NCBI RefSeq assembly: GCF_000150275.1
Contig: NW_002060945.1
Coordinates: 2,875,172-2,939,171 of the forward strand
Length of the DNA stretch: 64,000 nt
Reading direction: 5' to 3'
DNA from: Trichoplax adhaerens
Taxonomy: Eukaryota > Animalia > Placozoa
The translations under genes were made by a program, and so were the position numbers. Under the pieces are notes generated by a model. The model saw nothing but the letters and a program-made list of their open reading frames with translations. It was not told where the DNA came from and did not search any database. Of this stretch, positions 3,103-61,733 are shown piece by piece (the stretch's first letter is position 1; every line of letters starts with the position of its first letter).

Positions 3103-3346
3103 CCTATTTTACTTGATGGGGGCGATTTGGGCCCAAAAAGTCTTTCAAAAAGAGGCCTAGTTTATTATTGTATAGCTGTAATCCACTAGAATTATCCAAC
3201 ATACTTTGACTTGATTGACTTTCTCTTTGATTTCCTCTGTGCAACTCTGAAATCCTGCTCTACTGTACAATAAGTGTACATGGAAGCTTGCAAATTCCTA
3301 TTGTAATTCCACTAGGTCAACTGGTGACGTGACACGCTGATCCAAA

Positions 3347-5743
3347 ATGAATTACGCCTTTCTCTTCTGCTTGATAGCGTTGCTCATCAAATTAAGCGCT
3401 GTGAGTTTAATCATGTCATAATTAGAAATGAATCATTTACAGTTACAAAGCTTAAAACTAAACTGATCGATTGCATCTTGGTTACGCTATGGATGCTATT
3501 ACAATACTTATTAGTCGAGATGCTATGATATGTCACAACGATGAACATGTTGAAATGTTGTTAGAGTTAGACGCATAGTCTATAAAGTAGCGATAGACAC
3601 AAATCAATATTGACTGCTATGGTAAAAGATCAACTACAATATCATACCCACATTGTACAACCAAAGCAAATTAGAATTTATAGACTCTACATTAACAAAT
3701 AGGACCATCTACGACATTCATAGTTTGTTCTCAATACTAAGGCGTAAGATAATAGACTAATACACTTTGCTTGAATTTCAATCATTCCATAGGGTCAATT
3801 TAGCAATTCACGATGTATATGCGTATGTCCTAAAGATACCGAGTACACCAAGATTAGAAATGTATTTATTAAAGTGGTGGAATCCACTCAAAATTGGTAA
3901 ATTCATGGTGATATCTTTGCTGTTGCAATACGTTTTCATGTATAATATCATCCAAATGATACTGCTTTATAAAGTCAGCCACAAGATAGAATGATAAACG
4001 TAAAATGTCTTCAAACTCCTACTTCCGGTCTCATCCAAGGATCGCAACGTGTAAAATAGTTACTGTTATTGTGCGAAGACACATCCGTGCCTAAAGATAC
4101 AGTGATGTTATTACATACCGATACTGTTAGTAATTCTTATACAGTTTGCAAGCGTACCACTTGAACTGATTCTAGAATTAGTGTTAACGCCACTGGGTAC
4201 TGTAAGTAAATGGCATTGATTCCTTGTAATTACTTGGATATGAGATTGACTTCAAGCTATAGCCGCAAAATGGAACGATTATTTGTATCTAGTCAAGAAC
4301 TATTCACAAAAGTCATTACTGCTAACTGATTAAACGATAAAATATCTAGGTCTTCATCAATAATTATCATTGATACTTCATATAGAATTGTTTGATATCA
4401 TGCCTCTTACTCAAAAGGATGAAGTACTGTGTAAAGAACCACTTTATCCTACATTTCTGATATATACAAAATCGCTTTCAATATAGCACCTGCTCCAAGG
4501 CTGTCGGACTACCAGATATATTTTGCCTACGTTGCCAGTGTAAATTTCAAACTCGCAATATGGGTATCAATCAGGTAAATTGTTAGAATAGCTAAAATGC
4601 TCTGCCAGCTGGGTATGATTATACAGCATACTAGCCTGGTAACATAGCGAATGTAATGACAGATATAGTAAGTTAAAAACACACTATGAAATTAAAACAT
4701 AAAAATATTGTACCTCTTGGAATATCTTTATCACATTTTTCTCAACGTTGCGGTTCAATACTTTTACAGGGCGTTGTTATTTTCGTCTTGGTCGTATTAG
4801 CATTGCTGCTATTGTATCTAACGTATTCAATTTATGAAAAGTACGCAAGGAAAGAACTTCCAAGAAATAGCCAGATGCAGGTAAATTATCAATAGTGCTA
4901 ATTGTTAGTTCTAAAGTGACAGCATATTTCCATCTCGACCAGTAACCCCTATATAACTAATTGAAAACTGTCATGATAAGAAAACGATCATGATTTGACT
5001 ACTCAATACTATAGCAAATGGCGTGATTAAAATAGGGACACCCTAGTTGAAAATTGGAATAGATGAAACTTTCTTAAATACACGTATTTCGTTTCAGTAG
5101 TTGGCCATCATTAATCTTACTCTTCATCTTAATACAAGTGTTAAGACTCTAATAAGCTAGTAAACCTTACTATTAAAATAAACTACAGCCCTTTTGATAG
5201 TCGTGATTTAAAATTTATTTTTTACCGACACTGAAATTGCGTTTAGAGCCAGTCACATAGGCATATCCCATTAGGCGCATTAAAATTTTAATAGAATTTT
5301 ATATATAAGCATTCTAAAGTATCCACTCTATGGCTCATGCCGCAATGGTGCTTGTATTTACAATGAGAAACTACCTACCATTGTTACTAAGTAGGCGTTT
5401 GCAGGAGTTTGTAAAATACGTACAGATTATAGAAATATTCGTAACTAGAATAATTACAATCAGTAATAAATATCCTCGAATTTGTATATCTAAATTTTAG
5501 CTAGACAACTGATTAAATACGCTTGATGACTTACACTCCAATGTCTTTGAAAATGGATCTTGTAACGGAATTTTCTTATCACCAGCCGACATTAACATCA
5601 CTAATTATATTTCTCTATAGAATCAACAAAATTTGAATACCGAATCCATTTCCAATCGAATTATAAGATTTCGCACCAACTGGAAAAAGCAACTTACTGA
5701 ACAGCAAAATAATATTTACGTTCGTCATAATATGTTATCGTAA
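3347..5743 (+). CDS. TMEM9: TMEM9/TMEM9B family lysosomal single-pass membrane protein, 5 coding exons, 159 aa
   Basis: Exons 3347-3400, 3793-3896, 4487-4574, 4770-4880, 5621-5743; all introns GT-AG and phase-compatible (0,2,0,0). Translation: MNYAFLFCLIALLIKLSA|GQFSNSRCICVCPKDTEYTKIRNVFIKVVESTQNC|TCSKAVGLPDIFCLRCQCKFQTRNMGINQ|GVVIFVLVVLALLLLYLTYSIYEKYARKELPRNSQMQ|NQQNLNTESISNRIIRFRTNWKKQLTEQQNNIYVRHNMLS*. It has the signal peptide, RCxCxCP, CxC, CLxCxCxY/F, TM helix and WKxQxxEQ...RHxMLS C-terminus of TMEM9. AATAAA at 5799 and 5819. Confidence 0.95.
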
Positions 5744-8700
5744 TTTTGAGCTGCATACTAATATTTAGGAATGATGCGATAGCAAAATACTACATTTTAA
5801 TAAATGCTCTACAGCTAAAATAAATCAATTCTCTGATAGCAGTCTGCATTGATTTATCCCACAAATATCATTATCTGTTTTAAGTTCTGGAATGTTTCAT
5901 CATGTAGATTAGGAATACTTTGTTGAAGCTTCAATTTTGTTCAAAATTTAGTCCACTTCAACAGCAATCTCAGCCAAGATTAATCTAGATTATTTCTATG
6001 CTATTTAAATGTCTAAGTAGATACTATCAATTCTTTATCTGAAGTAATACAATGTCTCCAGTGTTGAAGTTACTGCAGATTGCGGCAATTCGATAGGACG
6101 CGGTATCATAGACTTGTCAGACCTGACCGTTACACCGAATGACTCTATTTTCATAGTCTATAATGAGAAATTCTACCGCAGAATCTTTGATTTATACTTA
6201 TTCTGAGACGTGTACTTGCAACATATCACAGAACGAAATGCATGTACTGTCAATTTAATTAATTAATTATGAGAAAATACGTCACTTAAGTAATTACATA
6301 CTATAAAGAGACCTCCAATTTCAGTGGTGCCCAATTATAGCATAGCTAAGACTATTATTATTTAATGGGTTACTATTTATTGTATTATATTTTGAACTGC
6401 AATCATGGTCCAAAATAAATGAGCTAGAAATATTAAAATTTGAGAATAACAAGCCGATTCGAATTGGCATAGAAGCAATGCTGTAATGATTTAGCTAATT
6501 GCAGCAGTTATGTAGTAGGGTTAAGAAATCATGCACTAGAAAGGCTGATCATTGATCAACAACATGGGATGGTCTATCAACTTCCATGTTAAAAGTGAAA
6601 AGAACGTACAAAGTGCGTACTAAACAGACTGACTGATTGGCATCCGTGTTCCTTGGTAGGTTCTTTAGCGTCATTTATATCTCCAAGTTTACCGTAGCTA
6701 AAATCATACCTATTATTCATGCAAGATTTTGCTTCACCAAGCTTTTCCATTATTCATAAAATATCATTAGCACTCAATACATAAAGAACAAATTTGTTGG
6801 TGAATCACTATCGTAGTTATCTAGATTTTAAAATACGATCTTACTGAGACTTATTGCAACGTTTACGTTGATTTATCGTATCACAATAATGTATAATGCT
6901 GAGAAAGGAGCAGCACACCGCATTTGAAAAAAACTGAAGCTGTATGGAATTTCAATAAAATTTGTGCATCCGGTAGCCTATCGCAGTATACTGAAAACAA
7001 GCATAAACAAAATGAAAGAAAGTTATACCTTATGCAATAATGTGTTGGAAGCTGTAAAAGAATGATATACTGTACGAGTAAAATCACAAATTGTACATCC
7101 ACTCAAAGTAGAACTTTTTATCTAAAATAATTTTTTATTAAAGCGTTTAAGTAGAAATGATCGAAAAATATAAAAGCAAACTATATAATGAATAAATTAC
7201 AAACTAGTCATTGCCCAGACGTTTCTAAGGCAGAATTTTGTGAGCAATTTAAAAAACCGTTAATTAATAGAATAAATGTGCTATAACTACGAGTGCCCGA
7301 GTATTGCACGTCATTGTACAAAAACGTAAAGAAAATAAACACCCGATCGTCACGCATACATCCGTGAGCAAATTTTTAAGCTACGAAACAGCCAATTGTA
7401 ACTATCTCAATATAACGATGAATCTGTTAACAAATCGATAAAGAAACCTGTCTCAATAATTATTTTTAATTTATTATCAAGTTATTAAATTTAGGTATCA
7501 TGAATATTAATATGTGATCAATTACGTCCGTTAAAATAAAATAAAACAGTTAAAATTACGGGTAAAACGAAATAAATAAACCATGAAAGAATTAATGGGT
7601 AACTATGATTTTAACTAGCTAGCATCATTAAATTCCTAAGTTGATAAATGATGATAATTTTCATCTAAATTCATCAGAAATTTGGAAATATTTGTAGGAT
7701 CTCAATGTTATTGGCAACAAACATGGTAAAGATGATCATCACGTAATCAAAGTATCTGCCAGATAGTTGTCAACTACTGAGATTAAAACGTAGAACAAAA
7801 TTTAGACTATTCCTATTAGACTATTAGGCTATTCCTACTCATTAAAAAAATTCAAAACAGCTATTTAAACTTACGAGATGCTCGTATTTAAAGTCTACTG
7901 ATGTAAATTTTTTTTGTCCTAAACAATCAAGATTATATATTACCTTCAATAGACCAAAATATATACAGTATAAAGGTCGATCGATTTGAGATAAAATAAG
8001 ACACTATGTTTAAGACAATATTTAAGGGCCTGATTCTCTTAGCAAGCATTTACTATTGCTAGATAGTTTATTGTATTTTCAGGCTTACAGTATGATTATA
8101 TCTGAATCTTAAATAGACAAGTTTATCGTTTTCAATTTAAGATTCAATTTCATCATACCTTCGATTTTTTCAATGAATAGTTAAATGTATATAATTCGCA
8201 TAAATGTCTAATAAAATGTATCTTCAACACGAAATAAATACATTTTATTATCTCAATCATTACTATATACAAAAAATCGAAACTTACGACAATTGTGAGA
8301 GAATTGCATTTAGTAATATTTTTAACCTTGATCATATTAGCTAAATTTATAAAAAATTTGGGATACCTTTACCGCTTCACTACTTGAATTTTTACGTATA
8401 GCATCATGATCTCAATCATCCATGTACGCGTATTCATTAACACAACTATTAAAGAGTGTAGAAAGGTGTCCGTAAATATGTACATTATGATAGGGGAAAT
8501 CCTGTCGATTACGGATTGTCCCCAGATAGTGTGACGTGTAAGTCTAAATATCATGATTACGATTAGCAATAAACATAAAAAGTGACTACTATTTGAATAT
8601 AGGTGCTAAGTTTAATTAGCAGCTTTCGCATGCTCAGCTAGAGACAATTAGTAGGTCCGGAAGTCGGAGCGAGAATCGGGAATCGACGTTAAATATTAGT

Positions 8701-11700
8701 CTACCTGCCTATGGATATCGTAATATCTAAGAGACCGGGGAGGCCATACAAAGCTAATATTTAGAATGCTATAGTAAAGCTAGTAGAACATAGACTTGTT
8801 TACAAGCAAAGAATTGATAGCGGTCTTCTTTTATTCCTGAGTCCAATCTTTAATTGGACAAATACTGTTAAACTGTAGTCAAATGCATTTTTTTTAAATA
8901 AAGGTATTTTTCTTATACTCTTGACGAGTTTATTGACTGTATCAAACTAAAGAGTTGAACTATCGTATAGTAAATTACTGCATATAGGTACCACGTTACA
9001 AAGAGCATCTGTTTATTCATTATCAAATTGTAGGTTTGCAAGATATTTAATTACACTGAAGCGCTAAAATTTACCTGTTGATGTTAAAGCTTGAGAATTA
9101 ATGATTTGTTTGCGTAAGACAAACTGAAGTATAATAGCTACCATACACAACAACTGCTTTTTATTGAATTATGCGTGCCTGTATCGTAGAATTTGCATTA
9201 GATGCTAGTAATAGTACGAGATAAATTGCTCAAGTAGAAAATTTCATTATCCTAACAAATCTAAGTAGATAAAAAAATAATTGAAATACAATGTATTATA
9301 AGAGGACAAAACATAATTTGTATTTTTTAGGATACTCGAATGATTGATGTTTGCTTACAGTCAATCGAAAATCATGCTGTATAATTATTATTTTGATAAC
9401 GAAGTAATAGACCAACATCTATTTCTTATGCATTTATTTATATTAGCAAGTATTAAATCATGATAAAAGTGAGGTATTTAATTGATAAAATAGTCAATCA
9501 ACGTAAGATAAAATATTCTATATGTGTGCCTTTATGCGATATATTGAGGAACAATATTTACTTATACCCTAATTAATGATGGGGTACTCTTTGGTTTCCA
9601 CAAACACGAACAGCTGCCTGTCTGATATTTTTCTGACGCCAATTTAATGTGCATGCAACGGTAAGGAAATAGAACGTTAAAGATGGAAATCATTTCGTTC
9701 TCTAACATCCATAATTTCTACTAAAATTGGCTACCTTTATCTATTCATTCATCCATCAATCAATCATTAGTAATTAGTAAATCCACGGTTAAAATCATAA
9801 TACAAACACTTCCTTAACGTAATCAATAACGCTGAAGCGAAAATTAGATGACTGAATCAATAATAATATTTAAAATTAATTAGATTCATAAGAGTTTAAA
9901 GCTTATCTTTTGTCGACTACTTGTGAAGAGGAAATCATAGCTAGTTCTATTTCAGTTAACATGTCTCATTTTCAGAATATTAGTCCACAAAATACTATAC
10001 AATGCGCGTACTTATTAAGGAACCTATACAGTACTATTTTATAAGTCCAATAGTCAAAATTCGAAGCTGCTAACAATGTATATTCATTAAAGACTGCCTA
10101 ATGGTCTTGATAATTGTCAGATTAATACCATATCAAATTGCATATTGCCATTTCAACAAGCACCATACTACCACTTTGTACATAAATATAATAAGCAGGA
10201 TTGCATCAGATGCAATTAAAAACAGTGACTTAGAATCAAATTGAAACAGGTCAAAATTTTAACATAAACAGTACGGTACACAACAACGGAAGACTTTTAT
10301 TGTCTAGCTCTAACTTAGATGAGCGTATTTCAAGTAGCACGTTCACGCCCTTTTACTAAAAGTTTCTAAGAGCAAATCGAATCAAACTTGTGCTAATTAG
10401 CCAATATATTGTACGATGATTTTTATAATTAATGGAACGTGTATTTTTGAAGTTAATTAATGAAAGCTTTTTCTAACACCTAATTAAATTATATGTCTAT
10501 AACACAACATATTTTGATCAACTCCATTTTACTCTTGCTTGCTAATTAAAACCATATGCACATTTGTATTTCGCAGTCTCAATTATCTGATATTTCACGC
10601 CTTTCAGATGCTAACGACTTCTTAACGATGAAATCTAGACTACAGATTTAACCGCTTAATTAGGCCGATTTACATAATGTAAAAGACGATATTATTTACT
10701 TAGCTATGCTAATTAATATCACTACGTATAGAAATTATTCTATTTATAGATGTTTTCACCATATTAAAACAAAGAATATTGTGTAAATTAATCAAGCAAG
10801 AAATACAATAGATAATATCACTCAATCTGTCTTTAAATTAATTAACCGTATTTAATCAAGATAAACTACAAGTAAAATGCTTGCTATATCCTATATAGCA
10901 GATTAATATTCTAATATGTATGCGAAAAGAAGTGTTACTTTACATTTATATTTAGTACATAATACATTCACAATTCATTACTATGTATGATTATTTGCGT
11001 CTTCAATGTTTTTTGTTGAGACTTTTCGATTAAATGAAAAAGTATAATCTAGGAATTTTCAGTTATTAGAAATATTAAACTAAATTCAAGTATTGGAACA
11101 TTGTAAGCTACAAATATTCCCAGCTTCAATAGCTACAGAATTTGCTTTTAATAATTGAATGCCAGTGTGATATACCTAGTCATCAAATATACATCGCTTT
11201 GATACTTTCGTCTACTTTATATTATCACTTTTTTTCCTCATTCTCTTCCAAATCTAAACATTTAAATGACCGTGAGTACCAGCAAACAGGCATTTCACTG
11301 ACAAGATTTGTACTGTTATCATCGGCTCTACGAGTATTTCAACTAATACTGTCCAATCTCGAATACATAACATCGCTTTATTTTTGTATGTCATATCTAC
11401 CGAACAAAAACTGAATTTCACGGTTTATATGCCACCTTAACCTTATGTTTTTAATTAATGTCTGGTCACTTAGTTTACTTAATTACTAATTATCAGTTGT
11501 CATCAGTATTAATGCTACGAACAGCCTTAACTCAATCGTGGCAGTATAAATGATATAATAGGAATCACAACGCAGTGTAGACTCTACTTAATTTAATATC
11601 AGCCAATCTCGCATGCTTAGTCGAGCATTTCCTCCATATATCTCAACGACTCAGATTCTGCTATCATACTTAATACACTACAGTAGCCTTATGCTTCTAA

Positions 11701-14700
11701 TCAATCTTTGGTCATTACATTTAGATATTGCCTATCTCCTACGTATTACTAATTATCACTAATAGTTTTTCACGAATCTTCTTGGTAGCATCATTACAAT
11801 TACAGATGACTATTTTCTTTTCATTACTTTATTGCACTATCAACTCAGGCCTGTTAGTTAAATCACTGGCTGTGATCTATTTATACCAACATAATGCATT
11901 CTCATGAAAAAATAGTAATAAGGAAAGCTTTGTTTTTATTTTATTAAGCTCATTTACATCATTCCAGACATACCTAATCTAAAAATAATTATTCTGTTTA
12001 AATTATCAGCCAAAATGTATAATCCAGTACGGCAACGGGGCGATCTCCAATGGCAGTTCTCACTACTATTTCATAGAAAAAGAAAATTCAATCTTAAATA
12101 CTATTAACAGATAAGCTGACTTCATAAAAATCAAAATTGTATTCCATTCGATAAAGAAAGCATCTATACCATAAAAAAATACCAATTTAAATTTTCTAGA
12201 TATGCTAAAAAGCGTCGCTTGACAGAACTCCCGTGCACTAGCTTAGACTGTAAGAGAAATATGCAAGCATAAGCTGTTAGTAGAAATCCCTCAAATTCTA
12301 TTTTGGCAGTAATCGTATGAAACAGTTATTCTCATTTAAAAGAAGAATAATACTTACCTTCTATCCATCCTGTGGTTATTACTAGCATTTACCATTTCGA
12401 GGTTGCATTTATCACTAATATCAATATAAGTATTCTCCACAGAATATATTTAACTGTTACATCTAATCTAGCAGTAACGATCTGGAAAAATTTTATCCAT
12501 CCATTGGTACAGAGAAAATATCATCCCCGCTTAAAAGATGGTCATAACTATCGACTAATTTTAAAAAGATGTGCGAAAAAATTTAGGTAGCATAATCCCG
12601 GCTTACATTGAGGCATAATATTTTTACTAGAAAGCACGAATATACTGGTTAAGATTATAGCTATTATAGAATATATTAAATTATCGACTGCATAGATCTT
12701 ATATAAGGGTGGGAAAATAAGTTAACTCAGGCCATCTTCGGTCTGAAAATATTACTGTAGTTCATTACAGTATAAGACATGTTCATCTGAAGCAAAAATG
12801 AAGTTCCAGTGTTGCCAATATTCTATCATATCACGTTTTTAGTATGTCATTGCAATAACGCTTGGCATTCAAGGGTTAATAAATGAAGATTAAAAGTTTC
12901 AGTTTTTGCCATTATATATTTTATAGATTTTTGTTACGAACGTAAATATTGATAACTCCCAGCAAGTTAAGGCGATTTAGTAACTAAAAATTTGAATAAG
13001 GTCATTCACTTAATATTGGACATTTTACATTAATCAGGTATAAAAAATATTCTATACCATGTCATGTAGTATTATAAAGGCCAATGAGCACCTTTAAAAT
13101 ATAAACGCTATATTTCTATGATGGTATTTAGTGAATCTCAATTTACATTTAATTAAACAGCGCTCCAATTGACACATTTAAAGATAATTAGACCATATAA
13201 TAGCTGCGAGATTCAGGCAGATTTGGGCCGTGGCACAGTCGAGTCCAGTCCAGTCTCGCCTGTCTCGGTCATCGATTTTATGAATTAAAATTACTCCAAC
13301 GAATTTAGATAATAAAATACAATCCACGGGTTTTATTGTTTCTTTTATATTTATACTACCTCCAGTTTCAGTAGGTAAACAATAATATGCCACTTATTAT
13401 TGTAGTAGAGTAATTGATGATGAAAATATTAATTTATAGATACGTATAAAGAATCTATCAAGCCGCAGCGGTTACAAAAATGAAAATTATTTAATTAAGT
13501 GCAACTTAAAATTTCATTACGGATTACCTCGCAAATTAATGTCAGCCGTGGGATGAATTTGATTACACATTCAGATGAATACTACCACTCAGTATGTCTC
13601 GATACTTATTATTGATAAACAAGGTCATCCATAGAACTAATGTCGCTAAGTAAATGTTAGGAAACATCGTTCATTCAATTTAAATACAACTTACAACACA
13701 TTTGGATTATATTACAGTATTGATGAATCAGCCTTTCGTCACTATAAGATCCTTATTCCCAAATATATTAATAGTATGATACACTAGGTTACGATTTGGC
13801 TACAATTCTAATTCACTGAATGATTTTTATAATTATCAGACAAACAGGAAATTACTCGAGGAAATAATTATTCATTAAAAATAGCTAGTCTAGTACCCGT
13901 TCAAATGAGCAGGAACGTATGCTACACAAAACATTACTATGAAACAAAATTCATAGCTAGGTTATCATACTATGCATGAATCCCTTCTTCTTAGTGTGCC
14001 TAGACAGCTACTACTTACAATGATGCATCAAGTCGTTACTGGTATCGGGATTTCAATTTTCAGTCAAATACTACTAACGAACAGCTTTATAATATTTTTA
14101 CTCTATATCCTTGAAAAAATGAGCTGGTTCTAATACATTTTACAGTGTTGCGTTGAAACACTACACAATAAAATTAGGTTTATTATAATAGAATACCTTA
14201 ATACGATTATTTTACTACAAATAGAATCAATATAATAGCAATATTGATTCACAAACTCCATCACGGAAACGAAATCCTACAAAACATCTACAATTACCAC
14301 CTTAATTTAAACAGCTTCTAACCCTTCCAATTTTTGTCAGGCTTGTTCAGTAAACAATTGCCGATATCACAGTATATTCTTTGTATCGCAAAATATAAAT
14401 CCTATAATATAGAAAATCGTTACATACTTAATAGAAGTTTTAGAATAGGACATGTATGCAGTCAGAATGTCTAGATGTAATTGGTGATGCAGATTATTAA
14501 TGTAAAGCGTAGAAGAAGCTATTATTAGTTAATGCTTGATATTATGGATATATTACATGTTTTACGCTATGACTCCAAATTATGGATTTGCATAATTGTA
14601 TCCTTCATGAAATTAAGAGACGAGTAGTTCCGGAATTGAACTTTGGGCTTCGTCTCCGAGTATATTATACAGTACAGTACAAGGGATATTGTCTTACTAT

Positions 14701-15789
14701 TACAAAATCTGTCTTGCTTTGATGCGAGTTTATGACCATAAAGGCGCCGAAAAAGACACAACGGAATAGAATTTGGATAATCTAAAGAATTTTTATTATT
14801 TAAATGTTTTATTTTTATAATTATCTAGAGGATATTTAGCTGTTTTAAAATCAATAAATGAAAAGTCCATACAAGTATCTTTCTGTTTTAAAGACAGGAC
14901 TGAAGTGACCTTGTAAGTGAAAAGGGATCAATCAAGAAAACTTCCCACACAGATGAATAAACGTATTGCATATAGATTGTTACATGCGTATTATTGTATT
15001 AAAGGAAGTTGGCTTAAACCTTACTACGAAGGAATATGTTTACTACATTGCAAGCAATAAATAAGTACAAACGTCGGTAATGAAACTAAGTAAAATAAAT
15101 TTTTAACACTTTAATGAACATTTAATTGCCGTTAAAATTTACTACAAAATTAGTAGTTAAAGGAGTAGAACTGAAGAATTTCATTTCATCAAGAGTGGCA
15201 AGAATTAAAAAATAGATATGATCTTAATGGAACAAATACTTAGTTCGTTAGCATAGCTAATATACTATGCAAAGGCAGATACGTCGTTACATTAATTAAA
15301 GAAAATTAAGTCAGTAAATTAACATTTTATGAGACAATTTGTAATTTTAGTGCATAATGAAGTTATCAGTACGAATAGAGTATTGTTCTTATAGGCATGT
15401 TACTCAATATTTCATCAAGCTCATATTTTTACTCTAATAAAACTAGAATAAATAGAATTTCAAGTCACTGTAAGTGAAGATTTATGTGTAGCATTTGCAA
15501 CCACTACTTTTCTACTTAGTTTATAAAATAGGATAAAACTGAATTACAAAAAGTAAATAATTTTTAAAGTTTTCCTTACCGCCCTCTCATTGTATATAAG
15601 ATACGGTAGATAGCAAACCTACGTATGTTTAAAGTACGAATATTTTTTCTCGTATCTATAAAGATATACCATATTTTTAAGAATTGTAGCAAGAGTAGTC
15701 GCTTACAATGGTCAAAGTTAAATTAATACATCTAGAATGCAGAGTTATATTTGCCGTCAAGACAGATTTTAATCGAATGATTTAGAATA

Positions 15790-16374
15790 TTATTGACTAG
15801 ATGTATTATGGCCTTCCTTTAATATGTCCTCTAAATGTTTAATATAACGGATAGCGGCACGTAGTGTTTCTACCTTTGATAATCGTTTTTGGTTGAATTT
15901 TCGTGGTAAATGATCTCTTAGTTTGGCATAGCCTTCATTGACGTGACGAACACGAATTCGTTCCCGTTCATTTCTTTTATGAATAAACGAGGGTTCTGAA
16001 TTAAAGTCTAGGCAAGGCGGAAAAGGGATAACATTCATCGACCGACTAGTAGATAATGAAGAATGGTGTTCGATATCTTGCTGATGAATTGTAGATGTCA
16101 CTTGACTTGAACTAAAATTTATAGAATTAGCACTAGCACTAGCTGTTACAGTTATTGCTTGCGTGGGGGTATGATTATTTGTCGATTGATGAGAATGAGA
16201 ATGTTGTTGAGAATAATTTGCTGTTGTTGCTTGAATTGGCAGGGATACCTTAGTCGTGTTATAATCGTTTCCATTAGGACTAGAACTTCTATTAGCACTA
16301 TAATCACTAGTATGTTGCTGAAGGGAAGGCTGATGACGATCGAAGCTCATTGCGAAAGAAGAAGTAATAGCCAT
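15790..16374 (-). CDS. ASCb: Achaete-scute family bHLH transcription factor, ASCb (ASCL3/4/5-like), 194 aa
   Basis: EPSFIHKRNERERIRVRHVNEGYAKLRDHLP...KRLSKVETLRAAIRYIKHL carries the ASCb-diagnostic EPxFIxKRNERER, VNEGY, HLP and KRLSKVETLRAAI motifs; Ser/Thr/Gln/His-rich N-terminus. Confidence 0.95.
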   Translation of the reverse strand: MAITSSFAMSFDRHQPSLQQHTSDYSANRSSSPNGNDYNTTKVSLPIQATTANYSQQHSHSHQSTNNHTPTQAITVTASASANSINFSSSQVTSTIHQQDIEHHSSLSTSRSMNVIPFPPCLDFNSEPSFIHKRNERERIRVRHVNEGYAKLRDHLPRKFNQKRLSKVETLRAAIRYIKHLEDILKEGHNTSSQ

Positions 16375-19300
16375 TCGATAGTATTGAAATGATTATGAAT
16401 AGAAAAATTCTGGATTAGGGATAATAAATAGCGATTCGAAGACGAGATTCACCTAAAAAGTCGAAATAGGTAATAACGCAATTGATTAACTATACGCTAA
16501 ATACTAAATTCTAAACTATACATCACGTTCACTTTCTAGAATTTTAAGTATCTATAAACAGAGAAGAATGCTCGTTTATTGTATGCTTCCGTAATATAAT
16601 GGTAACATTTAACCAAAATAATCAATAGTAAGTTTTAAAATAATATCGCACTATCTAAAGCATGTCATTTTGAGCTTATTTTTAGAATACTAAATTAAAT
16701 ATATGCTTAATATTGACCTAAAAGTATTTAAAATTAATAAATTTTTGAATATTTGGTGCCACTTTTCCACATAGAATAATGAATAATTACTGCAATTACA
16801 TTGGAGAGTAGAGTGTGTGCTGAGTCAAGTACGACGTATGAATGCGGATTTTTACGTCTATGTTACAGCAGTAACATTCTACTGGTGAACACTAATTTAC
16901 CCATTTCTTTTTCTCTAATAACATAGAAAATATTTCGGTCTCAACTCTCTTGAAATAACAAATTACTAGATAAGCTGATTATCTCTTTATGAATTCATTT
17001 TATATCAGGTATCAGATATACCACAAATTAAATGTAAACTTTTTGAGTTATCAATCGCATTCATCGCCATAAGAGGAACCAAGAAATATTACGGAATACC
17101 ATAATTTATTTTCAATACAGATTACTTATAAGTAGGGCGAATATTAACACTCGAGTAACGATATTCTTTTCTGGCAACATTAAGTAGGGTAATATTCTTG
17201 ATCGATACTGAAAGATATCTTACTAAGCCTGACATATAACTCTAAGCTTAAAATCGTTTCATTGTCAAAAAGCAGCAAGTTAATTAGTTATTGAATCACC
17301 GAATCACCCATGGAGAAAATGACGAGAAAAATTAGATCGATAAGACGCCTTATCTTTTCATGAGTCAAACTTTATATTATTATATTAAATGGCAACTAAA
17401 ATATCAAATTATTTCAGCCCTATAACTTCAATTACAGAATTATGGTATAAAATTTTGAAGTTTTTGATAACAAAATTTAAAATATTTGCGAAATTCAAGA
17501 TAAAATAACAAAGTAAATTTAATATAAATTATCATTGATTATAATATTGTCGAGAATAAGGTCTTAATGCATTAAAAATTTAGATCTGTAATCTTACAAG
17601 GATTCATATTGGGTTATATGATAACTAGGCTATTTGCATGATATATTTAAAATTCTAACCGAGGATGAATTTATCACGTAATAAAGGTAATACATGTAGA
17701 ACTGAAATAAAATTTTTCTTTTATAGTATTGTACCCTGACTATAATTGCTGATAAATATTGTCGATTTTGACTAGTCTTATTAAACTTTTCAACATGTGT
17801 GACTTACTTGATAGAGGTAGCTTTCCAAATAGGTGATAGAAAGCCAAGCTAACTAATTGATAGCGATGAATCGATCAATGGAGATCCAAGAAATAAAAAT
17901 TTTTGATTGCAGTTCACGTTGTCACCGGTATTTGAATCCTGGATGTAATATGTCTTTTTTAGCATAAAAGAATTAATCGGCTACGCTAATCAATTTTAAA
18001 CAATTTACTAAGATACCGTGTCTGATAGATTACCAGTCAATATTGAATAGCTGGCACGATAATTGTTTGACTACTGATTTAACGAATGCTTCTATTTTCA
18101 ACCTGTATTTATATCCTGCCACCCGCCATACAAACCATCTCGAGTAATGATTTGGTATACTCCTAGTGCGATAGCAACGCAAAACTATTATGGAACTGAC
18201 CTACTTACCGAAGTTGAAAGGACTTGTATTAATTTAGGGTGGGGATTATGGAAGATGAAGGAATAAAATATCGTATGGTAGACGTCACTTTTGAAGCCAA
18301 TAATATCGCACATCTTAAATCAATAATTAGAACAGAATGTCCATTAAATAAAATAAAAGAAAAGTTAAAACGTCTTCAATGATTTATGAATTAAAATGAT
18401 CTATTCTACTCATTCTATTATTCAAGACAGCAATTCTACTCTATTGATCAGCAATACACAGGTGTATCTAGATCATTTTTTAAAATTATATACTACCAAC
18501 CTTCCGTTGAAACAATACCAAGTTGAAAAATCTGATATTAAAAACCATGGATGATAATGATTTTATATTAATATGTTTTACAATCTTAGCTAGAGTTAAT
18601 CTTGAAAATATGGATAATATTGACAATTTTATTTCAAAGTTTTTTCATTATCTACTTAGAAAATGAGTTGATATCCCAGCTTAATGTACTATAAATTGGA
18701 TGAAATAAGCATTCTCATTTATTTAATATTAAAATAAATTGCAATTTACGTTTAGAATTACAGAATAGAATAATGATTCAAAGTCATCTACAAGCAAATA
18801 ATTCAAAATCATTATTTTTATTCTCCTCTTCCCTACAGTGCTATAGCTTTTATTGATTTAAGCCGGTTGTATTTCTAAAATGAATGATGGACAGATAGAT
18901 AAAATACAACGAATTAAGACAATTATCTTCCTTAAGCGGATATTACTAAGCTCAGCCAACTCATTGTGTTCAGATGTATTAATAAAAATGAAATGGCCCG
19001 TACGGTAGAGGATGTAGAAAGTAATCAAGAACAGGTCAAATCTGTTACATCCGATGAATTGGATATTAGCATAATAATAGCAAGATAGTTTTATAAAAGT
19101 AACAGTAGCTCTTGCAGCTTTCATCGACAGCTCTATTCTCATATTTAGTACTGTTAAAAGATATAGATGTCAATTTCATCACGTCTTACAGGTATAGCCA
19201 CAATACTTGGTGCCGATATCTTTTAAGAATGTAAATACAGACTATATATGGCGTCTAATCAGATATCCCATAGATACCCACATTAAACAAACGTAAACTT

Positions 19301-35800: not shown

Positions 35801-35974
35801 AATTGATCATAATCATCCTTTTTCAAAGTAATGTAACGATCTTCTAATCTTACCTCTCACTAATTAAATTTTATTTTTGTTAAATGATTAGTGCTTCCAA
35901 AATATTGCATCATTCAAGCATACCGTTGTCTATTTATGAAAATATCCATTAAAGAAAGAAACGAACTAATAAAC

Positions 35975-36508
35975 ATGAATCCATTATCCGTAGATTCCAT
36001 ATCACCGGTCGATTCCGACTCTAATCTCTCGCAATATTCATTTACAAATTCATCGATACCTTCAATATCATCATCAAAAACGTCGACAACAATTACAATG
36101 AATCAATCAGATCCATGTTTAGATACATCTTCAGGATATTTACCAAATCATCAATCAAACCAATTTGTCCTTTCTTCATACCAAAATGATGAAGAAGAGA
36201 CTACAGTGCACCTGAACAATCAATCGAAGCGTAAACATTTGAAAAAATCGAAATCTAAAGAATCTGTTACGGCCAAACGGCGCAATGAGCGAGAGCGACG
36301 CCGTGTCCAATTGGTTAATGATGGCTTTAGTGAATTACGCAAGCATGTCCCAACAGATTCCGAAAATCGCAAATTATCGAAGGTCAAAACTTTAAGATCG
36401 GCTATAGAATACATCAAACAATTGCAATCGCTACTAGAAAAGCAAACTGTTCCAGAAGCACCTAGAAGAAAAGTTTATGCTCGTGTATGTCAAATACCTA
36501 CAGCATAA
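35975..36508 (+). CDS. Achaete-scute family bHLH transcription factor (ASCa-like / non-ASCb), about 177 aa
   Basis: [56 protein letters not shown]. The ORF track starts at GTG 35891; in-frame ATGs are at 35936 and 35975, and the latter has the better context (AAACATGA). Confidence 0.93.
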
Positions 36509-48875: not shown

Positions 48876-49427
48876 ATGTCTACTAATCCCATAGCAACAG
48901 TTTCTCCTCCATCGTCTTTAGCCATGGCAAAAATGAATAACGAAGGAGAATTACCGCCAGGGTATAGCACAAGCAATCGCTATCGATTACAAGTGAATCC
49001 TAAAGATGCTCATAACAGTATAGATTCCTCACTTCTCACTTATCAAAACAACATCAACCACAACAATAATATCCACAATCATCATAATAACAATAACAGT
49101 AATAATAATAATCATCATCATAATAACAACGATAGCGGCAGCCATGGTAAAAGGCAGCGAAGAGGCAATCATTATAAAAATATCAACCACCATGGAATCA
49201 TGCATCGTCGGAAAGAAAAAGAACCAGAAATGGTAGAAAGAAGAAATGAACGAGAGAGAATGAGAGTTAGATTAGTCAATGATGCCTTTAAACTGTTACG
49301 AAGCCATATACCGGTCGATCCTCGTCAGAAGAAACTTTCAAAGGTCAATACTTTGCGCTTAGCTATCCAATATATAAAATACCTACAACGATTAATTGAA
49401 ACCAACCCTCAACCCCAGTCATCATGA
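48876..49427 (+). CDS. Achaete-scute family bHLH transcription factor with Asn/His low-complexity tract, 183 aa
   Basis: EPEMVERRNERERMRVRLVNDAFKLLRSHIPVDPRQKKLSKVNTLRLAIQYIKYLQRLI; TATA box upstream, AATAAA at 49702. Confidence 0.95.
   Translation: MSTNPIATVSPPSSLAMAKMNNEGELPPGYSTSNRYRLQVNPKDAHNSIDSSLLTYQNNINHNNNIHNHHNNNNSNNNNHHHNNNDSGSHGKRQRRGNHYKNINHHGIMHRRKEKEPEMVERRNERERMRVRLVNDAFKLLRSHIPVDPRQKKLSKVNTLRLAIQYIKYLQRLIETNPQPQSS
49047..49130 (+). repeat. Coding (AAT/AAC/CAT)n trinucleotide tract (poly-Asn/His)
   Basis: Encodes NNINHNNNIHNHHNNNNSNNNNHHHNNN within ASC gene 3. Confidence 0.85.
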
Positions 49428-61229: not shown

Positions 61230-61733
61230 TTAATTAGTGGCAGTATCGTCGGCTAGTAAATCCTTCAAGTGATGGATATAATCGATAGCCATACGTAGTG
61301 TCTGAGCTTTCGATAATTTTCTTCGTTTGCCGATCACAGGCACATGCTTTCTGAGTCGAGCAAACCCATCATTCACTCGCTCAACTCGTTTCCTTTCTCT
61401 TTCGTTTCTTCGTAAAGTTTTTACAATTTTCGCAGGATTTTCGTATAGTCCACTTACAGAATGTTCCTCGACGCAGTAATAGTTGCCATTTGTACAAATT
61501 CCTGGACTTGATGCGCCAGAACTGCAATAAGGATCACCCATAGCAGAACTTGAGCGGCTCGTACTTTCACTAAATTCCTCGACATCTTGGATATCTGAGT
61601 GGTAATAGCCATAACAGTTTTCGTTACTCTTCAGCGGCTGTTGATATGATAACGGAAACGATGGCATTACATGGGTTTGAACATGGAAGGCCGCACCTGA
61701 TTGATAATAATCGCTGCCGGTATGCGCCATCAT
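61230..61733 (-). CDS. Achaete-scute family bHLH transcription factor (divergent), about 167 aa
   Basis: TLRRNERERKRVERVNDGFARLRKHVPVIGKRRKLSKAQTLRMAIDYIHHLKDLL. First ATG at 61733 (the ORF track starts at TTG 61751); TATTTAAG TATA variant at 61869-61862. Confidence 0.95.
   Translation of the reverse strand: MMAHTGSDYYQSGAAFHVQTHVMPSFPLSYQQPLKSNENCYGYYHSDIQDVEEFSESTSRSSSAMGDPYCSSGASSPGICTNGNYYCVEEHSVSGLYENPAKIVKTLRRNERERKRVERVNDGFARLRKHVPVIGKRRKLSKAQTLRMAIDYIHHLKDLLADDTATN

Follow-up and report, generated by a model that had tools for sequence, protein, structure and literature searches.

Gene pairs with conserved microsynteny form a well-known class of gene neighborhood. The achaete-scute complex of the fly, a gene cluster, contains four intronless ASC-type genes, which are ASCa-type, lineage-specific duplicates. 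In humans, the genes TMEM9B and ASCL3 are paired at 11p15.4, and TMEM9 and ASCL5 form a second pair at 1q32.1. Published gene lists give the order TMEM9B, ASCL3, and C5H11orf16 in turkey (PMC8470100), and the order CACNA1S, ASCL5, TMEM9, and IGFN1 in human chr1:200.6-201.4 Mb (PMC3760796). Such pairs resemble the ancient microsyntenic pairs and genomic regulatory blocks treated in the main text of Irimia et al. 2012 (PMC3514665), in which a non-developmental gene lies beside a developmental transcription factor in distant phyla. Neither TMEM9 nor an ASCb gene is named in that main text. A full-text search, whose reach excluded the supplementary lists of microsynteny surveys, likewise found no paper that names TMEM9 and an ASCb gene as a syntenic pair.

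The TMEM9/ASCb adjacency is present in two distant phyla, since the same two families that are immediate neighbors in the vertebrate TMEM9B-ASCL3 and TMEM9-ASCL5 pairs are also immediate neighbors in the placozoan Trichoplax adhaerens. The window analyzed here is a stretch of 64,000 nucleotides of T. adhaerens DNA (assembly GCF_000150275.1, contig NW_002060945.1, positions 2,875,172 to 2,939,171 of the forward strand), and all positions given below are counted from its first nucleotide. It is about 30% G+C. Within it, TMEM9 adjoins the edge of the genome’s only ASC cluster.

The gene at 3347-5743 on the plus strand is an expressed, correctly spliced TMEM9. Its coding sequence of 480 nt is carried by five exons, which are separated by introns of 392, 590, 195, and 740 bp that all begin with GT and end with AG. 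The per-exon translations follow the TMEM9 architecture of an N-terminal signal peptide, a Cys-rich luminal part, one transmembrane helix, and a conserved C-terminal tail. Exon 1 (3347..3400) contains the start codon and the signal-peptide-like N-terminus, exon 2 (3793..3896) encodes the Cys-rich luminal part with a CxCxC motif, and exon 3 (4487..4574) contains a second Cys motif. The transmembrane helix is encoded by exon 4 (4770..4880), and the conserved C-terminus and stop codon by exon 5 (5621..5743). All four splice joints, including 3400/3793 and 3896/4487, are present exactly in contigs of three metatranscriptome runs, and a single 1231-nt RNA contig contains the entire mRNA, extending to ~6308. 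Other RNA contigs reach ~6590, beyond which RNA coverage ends; the 3′ UTR is accordingly placed at 5744..6590 with an approximate end, the contigs stopping at 6308-6591. A fourth run covers the window evenly throughout and behaves like DNA.

The exons were scored singly, and never joined, against the Pfam family Tmemb_9 (PF05434), which has a cut-off of 28.6 bits. Exons 3, 4, and 5 score 17.6, 13.3, and 27.4 bits (E 0.0037, 0.078, and 3.4e-6), each alone below the cut-off, with a sum of ~58 bits. Their matches are colinear in the 145-position profile, covering positions 33-49, 53-73, and 111-145. Exon 5 also aligns to the terminal coding exon of a PF05434-bearing Xenopus tropicalis gene (TMEM9B) at E 2e-4. 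Together with the RNA-confirmed exons, these matches uphold the earlier note’s identification of the gene as TMEM9. In the searched assembly of 105.6 Mb and 1414 contigs, exons 3 and 5 each occur once, which makes TMEM9 single-copy. A six-frame search of the whole genome with the PF05434 profile itself found no match because the TMEM9 exons are too short.

TMEM9 and the ASCb-class gene, here termed ASC-1, are convergent and lie tail to tail, their stop codons being 10,046 bp apart. The intervening spacer (6591..15789) contains no recognizable gene and is mostly unique sequence, and ASC-1 is thus the next intact gene 3′ of TMEM9, as had been claimed from the sequence alone. The five longest open reading frames between the two genes are without a Pfam match, an Rfam search over the whole window returned no match, and no RNA contigs were found at 6600-9199. 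No internal repeats were found in the spacer; a genome-wide DNA search identified in it a short dispersed repeat of ~320 bp (13867..14188) with at least 30 partial copies across the genome, plus two short segments that have one or two relatives at other places in the genome. On the other side of TMEM9, ~13 kb of 5′ sequence without sizeable open reading frames is followed by a large gene with IgGFc-binding and I-set domains.

ASC-1 (15790..16374, minus strand) is a single-exon bHLH gene that encodes 194 amino acids, and its sequence assigns it to the ASCb class. Its bHLH domain matches Pfam HLH (PF00010) at E 5.2e-18 over residues 133-182. The best named database matches are all ASCL3/4/5 proteins or coral “achaete-scute homolog 3-like” proteins. 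An NCBI record holds a 194-aa protein that falls in the same 90% cluster as ASC-1 and is identical to it in the bHLH region, and a further NCBI protein of 90 aa is identical to part of the ASC-1 open reading frame.

The class assignment was examined with a maximum-likelihood tree of 66 sequences and 67 columns. Named proteins of both ASC classes were included together with unnamed representatives, and five further bHLH genes of Trichoplax served as the outgroup. Failure to group with ASCL3/4/5 had been named beforehand as a refuting outcome, and it did not occur: the tree places ASC-1 in an ASCb clade of 39 rows that includes all 14 named ASCb proteins, with support of 100/94. All 16 named ASCa proteins fall outside this clade, as do the three other ASC genes of the window, ASC-2, ASC-3, and ASC-4. 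The possibility that all placozoan ASC genes form one lineage-specific group was rejected: constraining them to a single clade is 42 log-likelihood units worse (AU p 0.0028). In the 66-sequence alignment, ASC-1 carries the ASCb motifs, namely an EP-x-F-I stretch before KRNERER, VNEGY, and SKVETLRAAI, whereas ASC-2, ASC-3, and ASC-4 instead carry the ASCa-like versions VNDGF and SKVKTLR.

ASC-1 had been treated as a lone gene; it is the first of a four-gene ASC cluster. ASC-2 (35972..36508, plus strand) encodes an ASCa-like bHLH protein of 178 aa that shares 99% identity with the Trichoplax sp. H2 protein named “Achaete-scute-like protein 4”, and its next-best named matches are ASCL1-like. ASC-3 (48876..49427, plus strand) encodes an ASCa-like bHLH protein of 183 aa, identified by its own HLH match and by the tree. 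ASC-4 (61230..61733, minus strand) encodes a divergent ASC-type bHLH protein of 167 aa from the first ATG and has a very long branch. Each of the four open reading frames has a strong HLH match of its own, and the tree places ASC-2, ASC-3, and ASC-4 with the ASCa grade. A whole-genome search found no further ASC-like genes, the next bHLH matches being ~41% identical and belonging to other families.

The cluster spans 46 kb and is gene-poor, with no other open reading frame of at least 85 aa that could be assigned to a family. The spacers around the ASC genes are unusually long and non-coding for such a compact genome. Gene order runs from TMEM9 through the ASCb gene to the three ASCa-like genes, which puts TMEM9 at the ASCb end of the cluster and all five genes within 60 kb. 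The clustering of ASCa-like genes with an ASCb gene in a placozoan is an added observation beyond the TMEM9/ASCb pair.

The vertebrate neighborhoods confirm the linkage of TMEM9 with ASCL5 and of TMEM9B with ASCL3 that the earlier note gave for humans; the turkey and human gene lists agree with it. In Xenopus tropicalis, the gene upstream of ASCL3 has a Tmemb_9 product of 193 aa and ends 5.5 kb before it; a DUF4537 gene (C11orf16 family) follows ASCL3, and the three genes share one strand. The gar ASCL5 gene has a CACNA1S-type channel gene 4.3 kb downstream. In both Xenopus and Trichoplax, the ASCb gene lies at the 3′ side of TMEM9, across a gap of 5.5 kb in the former and 10 kb in the latter. 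Relative orientation is not conserved: the two genes run in the same direction in Xenopus but tail to tail in Trichoplax. The earlier note had anticipated such a contrast with the human pairs.

Beyond the ASCb gene, the vertebrate loci continue with CACNA1S or C11orf16 (DUF4537), whereas the Trichoplax locus continues with three more ASC genes. No other vertebrate neighbor was found near the Trichoplax pair: a DUF4537 gene lies at a distance of 1.3 Mb, and the strongest matches to Cav channels are on other scaffolds. TMEM9 was not found within 10 kb of several vertebrate ASCb paralogues. Two loci were set aside as uninformative, the Megalops “ASCL5” and the Xenopus “ASCL3” (P0101), which have plexin/AMER-type and RtcB genes as neighbors. 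In the tree, neither protein groups separately from ASCL4-named proteins, so their source names are unreliable.

Lineages between placozoans and vertebrates were surveyed from ASCb proteins outward, with 10 kb searched on either side and one paralogue per species, which makes the survey a weak test. TMEM9 was within 10 kb of the sampled ASCb gene in 0/5 non-vertebrate loci (Oculina, Hydractinia, Ptychodera, Caenorhabditis nigoni, and one further eukaryote). A two-sequence profile of the conserved last TMEM9 exon had no match in those five loci and found only the Xenopus gene, and tblastn of single Trichoplax TMEM9 exons against the loci produced only noise at loose thresholds and, at stricter ones, likewise recovered the Xenopus gene alone. 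Both immediate ASCb neighbors are annotated in Hydractinia, and neither is TMEM9; in C. nigoni, where both immediate neighbors are also annotated, none of the seven neighbors seen is TMEM9. Two candidates were rejected. In Hydractinia, a weak match to exon 2 (E 0.015) belongs to a Cys-rich, Dickkopf-like gene of 198 aa, and a 281-aa neighbor in Ptychodera has no TMEM9-like terminal exon. The Stylophora ASCb protein was traced to short contigs only, and the closest placozoan relative to a 3.9 kb contig only. Because one paralogue was taken per species and most of these genomes have large intergenic distances, failure to find TMEM9 is not the same as its absence. The claim that the pair has been conserved since early animal evolution was not borne out by these loci and has two end points only, the placozoan and the vertebrates.

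The favored explanation, with a probability of roughly 0.58, is that placozoans and bilaterians both received the TMEM9/ASCb adjacency from their common ancestor. The adjacency would have persisted in two lineages with slowly rearranging genomes, and the ASCb gene would have flipped in one of the two. The two copies of the pair in vertebrates were left by whole-genome duplication. Inheritance is favored by the single TMEM9 copy and by the location of all four ASC genes in the window, which together mean that neither has an alternative partner elsewhere in the genome. Mistaken identity of either gene, for instance a pseudogene that looks like TMEM9 or an ASC duplicate peculiar to placozoans that only resembles ASCb, is very improbable and already largely refuted. 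Sub-threshold scores of the single TMEM9 exons and a bHLH tree of 67 columns could be read in its favor, but spliced RNA contigs match the TMEM9 model exactly, three colinear exon matches total ~58 bits, and exon 5 directly resembles the terminal exon of an annotated Tmemb_9 gene. The ASCb clade is supported at 100/94 and an all-placozoan clade is rejected at p 0.003, which argues against an ASCb look-alike. Coincidence is a more serious contender, although still a rather unlikely one: TMEM9 and ASCb may have shared one ancient chromosome-scale linkage group and become adjacent in two independent events, one in placozoans and one in the ancestor of vertebrates. The failure to find the pair in the sampled intermediate lineages, the different orientations in Trichoplax and Xenopus, and the lack of a third vertebrate-neighborhood gene adjacent in Trichoplax are all consistent with it. 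With gene pairs numbering in the thousands and linkage conserved at chromosome scale, chance is expected to produce some shared adjacencies, and the scanning of many windows makes some chance matches to human gene order expected as well. However, random placement of two named single-copy genes on this one scaffold of 9.66 Mb and ~1,000 genes would make them adjacent with a chance of ~0.002, or about 2 in 1,000, by a rough estimate. Specifically the ASCb member of the cluster touches TMEM9, and it does so on the 3′ side as in Xenopus, which adds modest weight to inheritance. The negative survey extended over just 10 kb and a single paralogue in each species.

Inheritance need not imply selection on the pair. 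The earlier note regarded the arrangement as typical of a genomic regulatory block, in which ASCb enhancers in or beyond TMEM9 would cause selection to keep the pair together with TMEM9 as a bystander. This is doubtful, and less probable than coincidence. The pair does have the usual make-up of such a block, in which a small gene with broad expression adjoins a developmental transcription factor, and TMEM9 mRNA occurs in three RNA runs. Both vertebrate duplicate pairs have retained the adjacency, and the unusually long non-coding spacers around the ASC genes also count in its favor. Against these points, nothing ties any ASCb regulatory element to TMEM9. Its introns are only 195-740 bp long, neither it nor its surroundings yielded a conserved non-coding element, the orientation of the pair is not conserved, and the genes are tail to tail, with an ASC-1 promoter that points away from TMEM9. 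The sole conserved non-coding piece seen in comparison with another placozoan contig is on the far (5′) side of ASC-1, that contig being 3.9 kb long and stopping short of TMEM9. Pairs held by constraint also usually occur in many phyla, and none was found in the loci sampled. The same low probability attaches to a broader proposal, in which ASCa and ASCb would be tandem duplicates born beside TMEM9 and shared regulatory DNA would have kept the block intact for more than 600 million years. Trichoplax would then be near the original state, and the human ASCL loci at 1q32, 11p15, and 12q23 would be its duplicated remains.

If the adjacency is ancestral, it provides position-based support for placozoan ASCb orthology that is independent of sequence trees, which matters because a bHLH domain of 60 residues usually yields weak trees. 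The catalogue of very old neighborhoods would then also gain an example that reaches from placozoans to humans. The compact placozoan locus is a practical place to ask whether regulatory constraint or slow rearrangement preserves such neighborhoods. If the adjacency is instead a coincidence, it serves as a useful caution against taking gene-order matches between two species as ancient.

TMEM9/ASCb is a plausible ancient gene pair, and at most one more case of a known class. It differs from the genomic regulatory blocks described in the main text of PMC3514665 in that TMEM9 is a candidate bystander without sign of regulatory elements, and in that the pair was not seen in the five non-vertebrate loci. 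The cluster beside it resembles the Drosophila achaete-scute complex, as each consists of four intronless ASC-type bHLH genes spread across tens of kb of gene-poor DNA. The Drosophila complex is entirely ASCa-type and composed of lineage-specific duplicates, whereas the placozoan cluster combines one ASCb gene with three ASCa-like genes and spans the older split between ASCa and ASCb.

All four ASC-type bHLH genes of the Trichoplax genome lie in a single gene-poor cluster of 46 kb (15790-61733). The cluster is composed of one ASCb gene, ASC-1 (15790-16374, minus strand), and three ASCa-like genes, and introns are absent from all four; this arrangement is consistent with ASCa and ASCb having arisen through tandem duplication. 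In humans, chromosome 12 carries ASCL1 and ASCL4, and chromosome 11 carries ASCL2 and ASCL3. Hydra vulgaris proteins P0123 and P0317, one ASCb-type and one ASCa-type, are located on a common chromosome record of 78,219,554 bp. Immediately past ASC-4, the terminal gene of the Trichoplax cluster, the flank L025 (G000:C1412:2939172-2949171) contains two TSPO/MBR-like ORFs on opposite strands.

ASC-1 is represented by P0121, a 90-aa protein recorded on a 9,661,127-bp NCBI contig equal in length to this scaffold; P0121 spans just residues 103-192 of the ORF at 15790-16374. A recorded protein of 194 aa, P0277, shares its 90% cluster, and the 90-aa model looks truncated. Approximately 1.9 kb upstream of ASC-1, a 112-nt non-coding stretch (18214-18325) is 69% identical to L007:1-118, the beginning of a 3.9 kb contig from a different placozoan lineage. 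Coding sequence aside, this is the sole match to L007 near ASC-1, and it is a candidate for a conserved regulatory element.

Within the spacer that separates the 3′ ends of TMEM9 and ASC-1 (6591-15789), two pieces (8457-9000 and 7378-7812) share 73-81% identity with single loci elsewhere in the genome, at ~0.603 Mb on scaffold C1410 and ~2.84 Mb on C1412, the scaffold carrying the window; neither piece had a match in Rfam. At 3321-3344, in the TMEM9 5′ UTR, one RNA contig (run X13) shows an insertion of 7 nt and a deletion of 1 nt. The RNA runs differ from the window at ~1% of sites, and these differences, including the 5′ UTR indels, look like strain variation.

The ASCL3/4/5 names in source records are unreliable. 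Two distinct proteins from the Xenopus tropicalis loci L011 and L021 are both named “achaete-scute homolog 3”; of these, P0198 alone adjoins TMEM9B, while P0101 adjoins RtcB and clusters with Xenopus laevis ASCL4.

The nearest gene upstream of Trichoplax TMEM9, in the flank L024 (G000:C1412:2855172-2865171), is large and encodes IgGFc-binding and multiple I-set domains. Human TMEM9’s other neighbor is IGFN1 (PMC3760796), which contains Ig and FN3 domains. Because Ig-repeat genes are very common, the presence of an Ig-type gene beside TMEM9 in both species is probably a coincidence. In Hydractinia, the gene adjoining the ASCb homolog (L019:2671-4087) encodes a 198-aa Cys-rich, Dickkopf-like protein, and a list for a region of turkey chromosome 5 includes DKK3 alongside TMEM9B and ASCL3 (PMC8470100). 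This pairing may be nothing, or it may be a faint trace of a wider linkage.
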